Assembly: GCA_904063045.1 (NCBI GenBank)
Contig: CAJFCJ010000003.1
Span: 1,054,001-1,118,000, forward strand
DNA length: 64,000 bases
Origin: Dimorphilus gyrociliatus
Taxonomy: Eukaryota > Animalia > Annelida
Direction of reading: 5' to 3'
A program made the position numbers and the translations under genes. Positions 1,766-64,000 of this stretch are shown in pieces. The notes beneath the pieces were generated by a model, which was not told where the DNA came from, searched no databases, and saw only the letters and a list, made by a program, of their open reading frames with translations. Within the stretch, counting starts at the first letter, position 1; every line of letters begins with the position of its first letter.

Positions 1766-4125
1766 ACTAATTTTTATCCAATATGTTCTTTTTTAAAAAG
1801 ACTGTTACCGCTCTTGGTGAGACTGGGCCGTTTCCATGTGTGTATATTCTCTGCGTCATATCTGTTTTCGAAACTAGTTTTAAAAAAAAAAGATCCAATG
1901 TATATTCTTGTTGTAGTGTTATGAAAATTCTAGAAAATTTTTTTTCTTAAAAAAAATGGGTATGTTGGTAGCGTTGGCCAAAGCTGATAAAAGAGATAAT
2001 ATTTATAATTTAATCGGCTTTTGTCTGCGTGTTCTAATTGGCTGTACGAGTTTTTATAGGTTGGATTCGCTTTTTACATATTGAGCACACTATGCATATT
2101 TTGGTAAAGATGATGATGATGATGATGAATATTGGCTGCATAATTAAGAAGACTGTAAGGCGCATAATGGTGAGATAGCAATATTTTGCGGCAAATTGTG
2201 TAAGGATGTCAGTGCGTGTACTTGTATGCTTCAAACACATTCATTTCAGGTAGATTACTTTTTATATAAATGTATATACAATACATATATATATATATAT
2301 ATACTTACATGTATACGTATGTGTATATATATGTATACGTATCAGTTCTAAATTAATTGTATTTTACCTGCAGCCTTTTCGAGTGTAAGTCTATCGTAAT
2401 AAAAAAAAAATTCCAAGTTGCGACTGGTGTTTATTCCTTTGTTATTAAAGCGAAAGATGTGTGAGTGTTTATTCAACGGTTGTATGTAGGTGATGTGACT
2501 GTTATATTATAACACTATTATCTAGAATTTTTAATACAAAAAGTAACCACAATTTTCCAATGGATAGTTCTCTTTTAATAAATTTTCTCAAATCCTTAGG
2601 TATAAATATTCTTCTGCTGAATCATTAATGATATTTCTCATATGCTTTTACCCCTGTTTACTAAAAGATTTTCCTTTGTTTAGCCAGTTTCCATGGAATA
2701 GCATCAATTCTTAAGCGCATAAACAAAGGAAACATTATATAATTATATCTAGCGCATTAAAAGCGTCAACAAACGCTTGCTTAATTTCCAAGGCAAATTC
2801 GTCATCTTCTCTCTTGGTCGATATTTTTTTACAAAGCAAATAACATATGCGAGCGTCTCTTTTTATGTTCCTTAATTTAGAAATAGACAAGGCTTTATAT
2901 GAATTCATTAATACAATAGAGATTGGAGAAAACAAAAAACAAACTGCTAATTGCATTCGTCGCCCCCAATTACATTATTTTCATTACGAAGTTCTTCTAA
3001 TAGTATAGTTTATTTTAAAGCCGAGAGTTGTAGGAGACTGGCCTACTGGACGACAACTATACAACCGCAATTTGTCCAGAATGGGGGACTATGGTAGTGT
3101 AGAATAATGTGTTTTTAAATGTTTCACTGGTAGATTTAATTGATATTGACAAACGTAAATAGTTAAATATTTAATAAAAATGATTAACTGAAAATATTTG
3201 TATATAAAGTCTAAAATAGGGCAAACATATTTAAAATAGGCAAACTCTTTGCGTTCCTAATACATTTCGGCCTTCGTTTTTTTTTTATTCTTATTCTTCT
3301 TTTAGGTATTACGTTATCGCTAATGTTCTTCTAAAAGCTTGTAATAAAATAGCATAAAGATTAGGAAATTTAGAGGAGTAAAATAAAGAAAAAATGTACA
3401 TTTGTATTTAGTCTAATCTTTTACTTTACTGCAAACAGAAATAAACTTCTTTCTAGTTTAACTATACCTAATTTTCCATCTGTTTGAAGGTTAAGATTCT
3501 TATTTCTTCTATCTATCTCTTTTTTTTCTCTCTCTCTCCCTCTCTTTCTACTTGTATCCAGCTATTTCAATTAGGACAATTTTCTATCTATTACATAACG
3601 TTCTCATAGCCTTAGAAGTCGTTCAACTCGCACAAATAAATAAGCCTTATTGTAATGTTTAAAAGTCTTTCATATTTTCCTATAATTCCCATAGGAATGC
3701 AATAAACAGGAGCAACTTGACCAGTTTGTCTGCGTTTTTTCTTACTCTTCCTTCACCACTTACTTATCCTAACGCCCTGATATTAAATAGCTGCCAGACT
3801 GTATTTTATGAAGTGTTTTTATTAAATTTCAACACAGAATATCTGGTTATTAGTTATTGAACGATCATCCAACTGGAAAAAATAAGAAATCGAAAAATTA
3901 TAGAAAAGTGTCAATTCCATAATATTTACTCATGAATAAATTATGACCATTCATATTTTATTGGTAGTTTCATTTATAAATACATAAACAAGTTGTTTCA
4001 CGTACGATATATAAATATAACAATACACATATACATATCTATATTCTGCAAATATATAAATATACTCAATATAGACAGTATATATATACACTTTATATAT
4101 AGTATATACATATAACATACATGAA

Positions 4126-27700: not shown

Positions 27701-28620
27701 CTAGTCACTCTCCTTCTCCAATTCGCTCACCACTGAAATTTGTACCACCCTTTGGGCCACCGGATGCCGATCCGAGAAAACAAACGGGATCGCCTACTAA
27801 TTCAAATTTCCCCATACTCCCAGGTAGAGGAAATAGAATGAAATTTATAGATTAATTTTTCACTATACTTCTTAGGAAACCCACTATAATATCAATATAT
27901 ATATGCTACCGTTTATATACTGTATATATACTGTATATTGTATATTAAATTTCTTTTATTATATTTAATAGCAAACTACGCACAAAGACAAGCAGAGTCG
28001 TTAAATATTCCAGGGAAGGGGCTAGTTAGTAAAGTTCTTCTACAAAGTATAGCACCAGTCGTGACTAGTGCGTTCCTGTCAAGAGTTGAACACGATGTGG
28101 ACTTGTAAGTATCCTAAAAACGAAACTAAACAACTATTACGAAAAATATTTCAGAGAGAGTTTTTCTGCAAAAAACAAATCAATTAATCATTTTTATTAA
28201 AATAACAATAGAAAACTATTAAAAACAAACCATTTCTTTAACACTATAACTACCACATTGATAAACTGAAATTATGAACCAGGGACGAACGTTGTATTAT
28301 GAATAATTACTTTGGTATAGGAATAGACGCGAAAATCGCGCTTGATTTTCATACTAAAAGAGAGGAACATCCCGAAAAGTGCAGGTAATTAATGGGCAAT
28401 TATTATATTTGGATATTTTCTTTGTCGTTCAGATCGTTGTACAACGAAAAAAGCGTCATGAATAATTATTTCGGAATTGGTATCGACGCCAAGATCGCAT
28501 TAGATTTTCACAACAAACGCGAAACGCATCCGGAAAAGTGCAGGTTTATATTTGAAGATTTTGAATGAACGCCTTCGCTTTCCTTCCTCCTACTACACTC
28601 TGTTGTATTAATATTTTTAT

Positions 28621-61820: not shown

Positions 61821-62185
61821 ATTGACAGAAGCAATTAAAAATATTCTTAAAATCCTTAATTAATTATAAACAATTTTAAGGTAAAAACCAGGCTTAAAAT
61901 CTCATTGTACATCTACTCCCATTTTCCTTATTTCAACATGGAAGCCTATAAACACGTGACCAACATTCAGCACTTAAATATAAAATATGAAAAGATGTAA
62001 TATTTGAAAAATCTCAAAATTATTTTCAATCATTTTAGCTATTTTAAAACACTTCTAAAGAATTATTTTTAAAGTTTTGTATTGTCCATGATCGAAAAAT
62101 TGTCACCACAAAATTAAATTTCATTGGTAACCAGTCTATTGATACTTAGAGGCTCTTGTTTCCTGTTCCGGTCGTCGTGTACAAA
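61821..62185. promoter_or_regulatory. Compact bidirectional promoter / 5' UTRs shared by RNF13-like and TMED-like genes
   Basis: Only 365 nt separate the two divergent start codons; contains CACGTGAC at 61953-61960. Confidence 0.7.
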
Positions 62186-63966
62186 ATGCCCGTAAAGATA
62201 TCTCTAGTTCTTCTATATTCTATGTTATACAGCTGTTCGGCTTTATATTTTCATATAGCCGAAACAGAGAAAAAATGTTTTATCGAGGAAGTTCCTGATG
62301 AAACTATGATTGTCGGTAAGATTGTTAAGATTTCTATTAGATCTTTCGATCTCCAAATACGGCTTCCTTAAACATCACGTTCTTAAGGAATCTTTGCGAA
62401 TTTTTATAATCTATGCCTTAATACTATGAGAGTCAATACAAGATTGACCCTTTTCCCTCCAAAATATCATTTGACAAACAAGTAAAATTTGCGCCATCTG
62501 CATTTATATGAGAAGAAATTCAACGTGGATCAACAGATGACACAAGCATATGTTTTTACTTGACTATTCATATAATAATAACACTATTTCAGGTAAATAT
62601 CGTGTTGAAATGTTTGATAAAAACCGTAATACATACGTGGAAACCGTTAGTGGACTGGGGATGCACGTTGTCATAACAGATCCCGAGCAGAAAGTTGTCC
62701 TATCAAAAGTAAATGTTTTTTCATTTTTTCTTATTTATTAACAGGCAAATACAAAGTTCTAAGATTCGATAAGAACATAAACGATTTCGTTACAACAACA
62801 ACTGGATTAGGAATGCACGTCGAAATCAAAGATCCTTCCGAATCAGTTGTATTGTCAAGGGTAAGGGAGAGGAATAAGTTGTAGAAAATATTTATATTCC
62901 CTCCTTCTCTATCCGTAGCCTAGATTGATGGGTTGTGCAGAATTTTTTATTTATATTATTTATGGTTCGGTGTGGGTTACTTTGCATTCCTTTTTCCCGT
63001 ACAACGAATGTTAACGAATATCTTAGAGACCATAAGATATTTCAACAGATATTTTGCGTGTAGCAGGTTTTCAGTTGTTTTGAAAAACGAAAGTGTTCGT
63101 TTCATAAAAGATAGAAATTCTACATCGCCAATTTTTTTAATGATTTGCATTTATCACGATAAATAGAATATTTTAGTTAAAAAATGTAAATTTACAATAT
63201 AATGTTAAAATGTAGAAAGAGGGTGTACAGAGAAGAAAACCTTTATATGATAAGATTTATTGCACAGTTATAGTTAGTTTTTTAAACTTGCATGACCAAT
63301 TAGGAAATATTTATTTCTTTTATTTTAATTTCTTTGTAAATTAGCAACAGTTTAAAATAGTAAACAAACTATTAAATTATATTATAGCTTGTTTATTTTA
63401 ATTTACATTCAGTACGATAATTTAAAAAAAAGAAGAATAAATAAACCAGCATATTCCCTGTTTTTATTTGGTTTTGAGGAAAATTTATTCAAACTATTTT
63501 TAATCGAATGATGCAATTAGACATGTTTTACAAAATTTTTATATATCAATTTTTATCTCTTTAGACATACGCTTCCGAAGGCCGATTTACATTTACATCA
63601 CATTCGGCTGGAGAGCATACAATTTGCCTTCATAGTAATTCAACTGCTTGGTTTGGCGGTGGTCAACTACGTGTTCATTTGGATATTGAAATTGGCGAAC
63701 ATGCCAACGATTATCAACAAATTGCAGCTAAAGATAAACTAAGTGATTTAGAAACAAGAATTAGACAACTTTTGGATCAAGTAGAGCAAATAACTAAGGA
63801 GCAGAATTATCAACGTTATAGAGAAGAAAGATTTAGGCAAACTTCGGAATCAACTAATCAACGGGTTTTGTGGTGGTCCATTGCTCAAACTGTTATATTG
63901 TTGGGAACTGGATTTTGGCAAATGAGACATTTGAAAGGTTTCTTCGAAGCAAAAAAATTGGTGTGA
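62186..63966 (+). CDS. TMED9: p24-alpha family cargo receptor (TMED4/TMED9, eclair-like), 215 aa; exons 62186-62315, [62593-62708 or 62745-62860], 63565-63966
   Basis: Signal peptide, then [25 protein letters not shown] (GOLD start), [32 protein letters not shown], coiled coil, [22 protein letters not shown], and C-terminal FFEAKKLV* (FF plus KKxx). Cannot be assigned to TMED4 versus TMED9. Confidence 0.95.
62593..62708 (+). CDS. TMED duplicated exon 2a ([39 protein letters not shown])
   Basis: tatttcag| ... |gtaaat, 116 nt, phase 1/0. Confidence 0.9.
62745..62860 (+). CDS. TMED duplicated exon 2b ([39 protein letters not shown])
   Basis: ttattaacag| ... |gtaagg, 116 nt, phase 1/0. Not in the ORF track. 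Confidence 0.9.
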
Positions 63967-64000
63967 AGTTGTTGAAATTATATTTATCTACTCATTCCTT

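Follow-up and report, generated by a model that had tools for sequence, protein, structure and literature searches.

A probable pair of mutually exclusive GOLD-domain exons in the p24-alpha gene of Dimorphilus gyrociliatus

Exons 2 and 3 of alpha-tropomyosin are mutually exclusive, with a branch point that lies too near the upstream donor. The same holds for exons 4a and 4b of OGDH (PMC7969005, PMC5740500), and a donor to branch point distance of less than 50 nt serves as the criterion for steric interference in a survey of human mutually exclusive exons (PMC5740500). The exon pair in the p24-alpha gene (eca/TMED4/9) of the annelid Dimorphilus gyrociliatus resembles both systems in having two homologous neighbouring exons, of which one is used, and a donor to branch point distance below 50 nt that would bar their joining. 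It differs from them in three respects. The whole intervening intron of p24-alpha is only 36 nt long, whereas theirs are long with a distant branch point; the block is presumed here; and the same p24-alpha pair has long spacers in other species.

A broader group of comparable cases is formed by the tandem-duplicated exon substitution events (PMC9741552, PMC5740500, PMC9013439). As in these, the p24-alpha copies appear ancient, are of equal length and phase and have a length that is not divisible by three. Joint inclusion breaks the reading frame and the isoforms differ in one homologous segment only. As far as the searches reach, p24-alpha is a new gene for this class. The main text of the human survey (PMC5740500) does not name it, mutually exclusive exons are not mentioned in the D. 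gyrociliatus genome paper (PMC7854359), and full-text literature searches returned no paper describing the p24-alpha exon pair. The pair itself is nevertheless less new than the initial annotation of this DNA assumed, as both isoforms are already deposited in GenBank and the same swap is present among RefSeq isoforms, in records that carry no mutually-exclusive label. New here are the phylum-level distribution, the extra copies in Capitella, Watersipora and Owenia, the contrast between short and long spacers, the identification of exon 2a as the major form and an antisense exon of a neighbouring gene.

p24 proteins are conserved ER-Golgi cargo receptors, and the choice of partners and cargo by their GOLD domain is poorly understood. 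Vertebrates also possess several alpha-type GOLD domains on an otherwise closely similar receptor, namely TMED4, TMED9 and TMED11. These are whole-gene duplicates whose differences extend to the coiled coil, the membrane helix and the tail, whereas the worm varies 39 GOLD residues within one gene. The pair constitutes a long-standing natural experiment in which a single gene swaps only these residues, pointing to the surface that matters, and it provides matched isoforms for a comparison of binding. Its interest is limited by a classical mechanism, by the prior deposition of both isoforms and by a function that is conjectural.

Gene organization and exon homology

The p24-alpha gene occupies four exons on the plus strand of the window, the whole 64-kb stretch of D. 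gyrociliatus DNA that was analysed. Exon 1 (62186-62315, 130 nt) encodes the start ATG, the signal peptide and the first GOLD strand, covers positions 1-24 of the Pfam domain EMP24_GP25L and ends in phase 1 at TCG|gtaaga. It is followed by intron 1 (62316-62592, 277 nt) and by two copies of exon 2. The first copy, exon 2a (62593-62708, 116 nt, phase 1 to 0), is of the A type and runs from cag|GTAAAT to TCAAAA|gtaaat; its opening hexamer, GTAAAT, is identical to the donor hexamer at its own 3' end. The second copy, exon 2b (62745-62860, 116 nt, phase 1 to 0), runs from aacag|GCAAAT to TCAAGG|gtaagg. Each copy thus has its own acceptor and donor sites, cag|G...A|gtaaat in 2a and cag|G...G|gtaagg in 2b. 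The plus-strand spacer between them (62709-62744) is a gt..ag intron of 36 nt (gtaaat...ttaacag) that contains a pyrimidine tract and likely branch sites for the exon 2b acceptor. The median intron length is 66 bp in D. gyrociliatus and 57 bp in Capitella (PMC7854359). The intron on the 3' side of exon 2b (62861-63564, 704 nt) is roughly ten times as long as the median intron of the species.

The coding part of exon 3 (63565-63966) comprises the remaining GOLD domain, the coiled coil, the membrane helix and an FFEAKKLV tail, and ends with the stop codon TGA at 63964-63966. It matches EMP24_GP25L at 3.5e-44 and the deposited product DgyrCDS2161 at 100%. Owenia, Lineus, Mercenaria and Lingula encode this part in three exons, Dimorphilus in one. 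Dimorphilus has lost two introns here, which agrees with the intron loss already published for its genome.

The assignment to the alpha type is based on human relatives and on architecture. Compared with human proteins, the deposited worm protein matches TMED9 at 1e-99, TMED10 at 1.5e-30 and TMED2 at 4.6e-15, with TMED5 also far below TMED9. A signal peptide, a GOLD domain, a coiled coil, one membrane helix and a C-terminal tail of the FFxxKKxx type fit p24-alpha, and the structural model shows strands and then a long helix. In the whole 77.9-Mb assembly, searched in six frames, this is the sole alpha-type p24 gene, with exactly two copies of exon 2; no second p24-alpha gene was found.

Exons 2a and 2b are identical at 24/39 residues and 68/116 nt. 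By codon position, the identities amount to 28, 25 and 16 of 39, as is typical of coding duplicates of great age. Translation of every other 114-nt stretch of the 64-kb window, on both strands, yields fewer than 12 identities in 38, compared with 23 observed for the pair, and the best match in local introns reaches 7 of 38. In spliced models checked for frame, inclusion of both copies or of neither shifts the frame and leads to early stop codons. For exon 2b against 2a, dN is 0.36 and dS is saturated. Identity of exon 2b to the homologous exon is 61.5% in Lingula and 69% in Macrostomum, and to the A copy of Mercenaria it is 67%; these values equal or exceed those for 2a. Both copies are intact, share the same phase and are, by these comparisons, under purifying selection, and 2b behaves contrary to neutral decay. 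Close relatives with a 2b-like exon were sought in a protein search restricted to this region, which gave 11 candidates, none of them close.

Much of this had been anticipated. The initial annotation described two 116-nt exons of identical phase with 24/39 shared residues and a 36-nt spacer, and all of its coordinates proved correct. Its prediction that double inclusion or double skipping would shift the frame was confirmed by early stops in both cases. Neutral decay of one copy, which it had named as grounds for refutation, is not seen: 2b is not decaying, as judged from the dN of 0.36, the saturated dS and an identity of up to 69% to the exon of other phyla.

Deposited products, protein segment and transcripts

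Both splice forms are represented among the GenBank products of the locus. DgyrCDS2162 joins exon 1, exon 2a and exon 3, and DgyrCDS2161 joins exon 1, exon 2b and exon 3. The splice variants of this annotation were generated from PASA transcript assemblies (PMC7854359). The 90% cluster of DgyrCDS2161 contains three GenBank products from the p24-alpha locus. Among the products is DgyrCDS2160 (186 aa), which starts at an ATG at 62550 within intron 1, reads the last 43 nt of that intron as coding up to 62592, continues with exon 2b and is without a signal peptide. Its jump from 62592 to 62745 implies the use of the GT at 62593 as a donor together with the acceptor at 62744. This model may hint at recursive splicing, or it may be a by-product.

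Only residues 44-82, within the luminal GOLD domain, are exchanged by the swap; the remaining protein is identical. In an AlphaFold2 model of DgyrCDS2162 (mean pLDDT 74), the replaced stretch makes up about 40% of the GOLD sandwich and comprises the end of a strand (40-52), a strand (57-60), a loop (61-66), a strand (67-72), a loop (73-77) and a strand (78-84). The 15 differing residues (47, 49-50, 55, 57-58, 60, 62-63, 70, 72, 75-77 and 82) lie either in the loops 53-56, 60-63 and 75-77 or at alternate positions along the strands, and the hydrophobic and glycine positions are conserved. The swap likely alters the surface of the domain and leaves its core as it is. Since the differences fall in loops and at alternate strand positions, they probably alter the contact surface for partners or cargo, where surface exposure is read from this pattern and not from coordinates. 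Details of the GOLD interface are absent from the TMED complex preprint. A switch of cargo specificity between the 2a and 2b forms is pure conjecture.

To assess exon usage, RNA contigs from four runs of four studies (X1, X2, X3 and X10) were placed on positions 61900-64000. The runs comprise two metatranscriptomes, a relative with a likeness of about 92-95%, and a run that contains 72% of the words and has spliced contigs. The joints of exon 1 to 2a and of 2a to exon 3 are present in all four runs. The former, from 62314/5 to 62592/3, is found in X1, X3 and X10 and slightly offset in X2. Intron 1 is skipped in the contigs of all four runs and has zero depth in X10. Exon 2a is the major form in bulk RNA. 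No joint of exon 1 to 2b or of 2b to exon 3 was found in the contigs of the four runs, which is weak evidence because contigs drop rare variants; the dominance of 2a is therefore shown and a lack of use of 2b is not. A joint of 2a to 2b is absent from the contigs of every run as well. The junctions proposed initially, from 62315 to 62593 or 62745 and from 62708 or 62860 to 63565, are accordingly seen for 2a in four runs but not for 2b in any contig.

Exon 2b occurs in RNA only within one unspliced X10 contig (62742-63594), which also covers the 704-nt intron at low depth. Its depth of 53 is roughly one-twentieth of that of the spliced exons in X10 (about 1100-1700). Exon 2b is at best a minor form, and its use rests on the transcript-based annotation. 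The start of the unspliced contig at 62742 would fit, at a guess, a merge with a joint from 62592 to 62745, the two paths sharing 'cag', and is not used as evidence here.

Instead of p24 pre-mRNA, the unspliced contig may represent antisense RNA from the neighbouring gene. In another X10 contig (depth 791), 61944/5 is connected to 62636/7, with CT..AC at the ends. The corresponding intron (61946-62636, minus strand) is canonical, with the donor CAC|GTATGT and the acceptor tgtttatag|G, and is followed by the 5' exon (61945 down to 61820, ATG|gtaagt) of a neighbouring minus-strand gene with a PA domain. It follows that an upstream 5' exon of the PA-domain gene lies antisense inside the p24 gene, over exon 2a. 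Antisense transcription probably continues past exon 2a.

Occurrence in other species

Isoform pairs distinguished solely by this segment of 37-41 residues are annotated, within the set of exon 3 homologues, in 13 other named species. They comprise the nemerteans Lineus and Tubulanus, the bivalves Mercenaria, Sinanodonta and Mytilus, the chiton Liolophura, the gastropods Biomphalaria, Aplysia, Littorina and Babylonia, two Octopus species and the annelid Owenia. The swap is also present in two further transcript sets. Isoforms X1-X3 of Saccoglossus were considered as a further instance of the same swap and were rejected, as they differ at the N-terminus and not in this exon.

Genomic copies were located in five other species. 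They are arranged in tandem, have ag/gt sites and measure 110, 113, 116 or 119 nt, each of these lengths being 2 mod 3. The distance between copies varies widely. Copies A and B of Mercenaria are 542 nt apart and those of Lineus 1230 nt apart. In Owenia, copy A, a middle copy and copy B are separated by 563 and 1767 nt. Capitella has copies A and B with a spacer of 45 nt, and the bryozoan Watersipora has a copy A and a second copy with a spacer of 56 nt. Copy B of Capitella (L001 4092-4210) and the second copy of Watersipora (L008 ~3975-4090) both have ag/gt sites and an open frame. The former is absent from the sole product retrieved for Capitella, the latter from the product retrieved for Watersipora. 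The middle copy of Owenia (113 nt, L002 3790-3902, GAYKLEIKDEDTDRFEQVEDLAMHVTVEDPDEEVVLSR) has good splice sites and matches neither of the two retrieved proteins.

A single copy is found in Lingula, in the flatworm Macrostomum and in the amphioxus Branchiostoma, and the exon pair was found neither at the amphioxus genome locus nor in the Saccoglossus isoforms. Within the species compared, the pair is limited to lophotrochozoans. The survey of orthologs that had been proposed initially thus recovered the pair in the annotations of 13 species and, in addition, uncovered unannotated second copies in Capitella and Watersipora.

Two other exons of the gene show signs of duplication elsewhere. The bivalves Mercenaria and Dreissena also have a duplicated last exon (L004 21516-21671 and 23382-23525 in Mercenaria), with the ends ...FFEAKKLV and ...FFISKKLV. 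This is a second switch in p24-alpha, one that changes the membrane helix and the tail at the coat-binding end. In Capitella, a weak second match to the coiled-coil exon (L001 5015-5161, 37% over 49 residues) is located between annotated exons and may be another duplicate.

Descent of the pair and control of exon choice

The arrangement is very probably a conserved cluster of two mutually exclusive exons that arose by an old tandem duplication of exon 2 in a single p24-alpha gene, with either 2a or 2b included in each mRNA. The proposal in the initial annotation that one gene makes two variants by exon swap is supported by the annotation of both products, by the same swap in 13 other species and by the frame rule, but the RNA assemblies contain only 2a joints. 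The mechanism may be pictured as follows. If the exon 1 donor pairs with the acceptor of 2a, the donor of 2a (62709) would be unable to use the acceptor of 2b only 36 nt away. Donor-bound and branch-site-bound parts of the spliceosome would clash, and the 2a donor would go to exon 3. If exon 1 pairs with the acceptor of 2b, exon 2a would be removed inside an intron of 429 nt. Mistakes that include both copies or neither shift the frame and would presumably be cleared by nonsense-mediated decay. The frame rule would then be a safeguard common to all species, to which the very short spacer adds a further lock in Dimorphilus and, probably, also in Capitella and Watersipora.

Candidate YTNAY branch sites in the spacer place the branch-point A at 62723, 62733, 62737 or 62741, i.e. 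15-33 nt from the 2a donor, all below the 50 nt of the steric criterion. The initial annotation had stressed that the 36-nt spacer is far below the minimum of 56 nt that it gave for the other introns here, although a look-alike exon pair in the window has a spacer of 48 nt. The spacer agrees with the steric criterion in Dimorphilus, but a steric block cannot be the general mechanism, as the pair is kept with spacers of 542-1767 nt in Owenia, Lineus and Mercenaria. The frame rule, and not a steric lock, would therefore be the conserved safeguard. With the same exon pair at spacers from 36 to about 1770 nt, p24-alpha is a compact test case for a steric splicing lock. A search for inverted repeats, as would be needed for competing RNA structures of the docking/selector kind, gave only AT-rich, low-complexity repeats and no convincing pairing; the best repeat touching an exon is 16 nt long and 81% complementary.

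Alternatives to this reading concern the origin and use of exon 2b as well as the means by which the choice is made. As regards origin, the presence of the pair in four phyla suggests an old lophotrochozoan tandem duplication that preceded their split, although separate origins are also compatible with the exon tree. In this tree, which like the AU tests is based on 39 columns only, the first (A) exons form one group across all phyla (87/85), the second exons of molluscs are placed near the single exon of non-spiralians, and Dimorphilus 2b pairs with Owenia B (100/97), nested among the A exons. It is conceivable, though doubtful, that the Dimorphilus pair is a lineage-specific re-duplication or gene conversion of an A-type exon and is not orthologous to the second exon found in molluscs and nemerteans. 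Exon 2b is A-like, has its best matches among bivalve A exons and nests inside the A clade, further duplications do occur, as seen from the three copies in Owenia, and a tree in which 2a and 2b are held as sisters, i.e. a Dimorphilus-specific duplication, is not rejected (p-AU 0.45). Neither are an annelid clade of second exons (p 0.51) or a clade of all second exons (p 0.19), however, and forcing the annelid second exons together costs just 0.58 log-likelihood units. Position, order and short spacer are moreover as in Capitella, whose second exon is B-like, and the pairing of 2b with Owenia B counts against a duplication private to Dimorphilus. Another reading, that 2b is no longer productive in Dimorphilus, that its deposited models arose in assembly or annotation from RNA that was unspliced or antisense, and that the protein is made from 2a only, is unlikely. 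It draws on the exclusive presence of 2a joints in four RNA assemblies, on the confinement of 2b to an unspliced contig of low depth, on the antisense transcription into the region that the canonical minus-strand intron 61946-62636 shows, and on the 2b model DgyrCDS2160 with its start within intron 1 and its missing signal peptide. Against this reading, exon 2b keeps its frame open and its acceptor and donor intact, matches the homologous exon of other phyla at 61-69% identity, at least as well as 2a does, and shows a dN of 0.36 at saturated dS; the annotated variants derive from transcript assemblies, and many other species express their second exon.

The remaining alternatives accept two functional exons and differ in how one of them is selected. 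Exclusivity might be set only by the frame rule together with trans-acting regulators, the 36-nt spacer being a by-product of short annelid introns. The long spacers (542-1767 nt) of the same pair in Owenia, Lineus and Mercenaria, the length of 2 mod 3 in every copy and the genome-wide short introns (median 66 bp; 57 bp in Capitella) are in keeping with such a view, which is possible but the weaker account of the locus: at 36 nt, any branch site is at most 33 nt from the donor and thus well below the 50-nt criterion, spacers of 36, 45 and 56 nt are found in three distant lineages, and a second look-alike pair in the window has a spacer of 48 nt. Quite improbable is that exon 2a acts as a recursive-splice exon. 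The signature cag|GTAAAT at 62590-62598, seen in sequence only, would upon joining of exon 1 to 2a rebuild a donor, TCG|GTAAAT, and the choice between 2a and 2b would become a contest of two donors. The rebuilt donor would reach the 2b acceptor and remove 2a as an intron of 152 nt, the downstream 2a donor would be barred from the 2b acceptor by the 36-nt spacer and go to exon 3, and the antisense 5' exon of the minus-strand neighbour could bias the contest. Among the other species compared, only the exon of Owenia B (GTAACT) likewise starts with GT, and GTAAAT or GTAAGT is found in none. Mutually exclusive use of two functional exons, with the frame rule as the common safeguard and the short spacer as an additional lock, remains the preferred reading.

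The look-alike pair (28283-28543, plus strand) is located in a gene that the initial annotation assigned to diacylglycerol kinase. Both of its exons end in ...GAAAAGTGCAG|gt and are separated by a gt..ag spacer of 48 nt. Short spacers may be common for such exon pairs in this genome.
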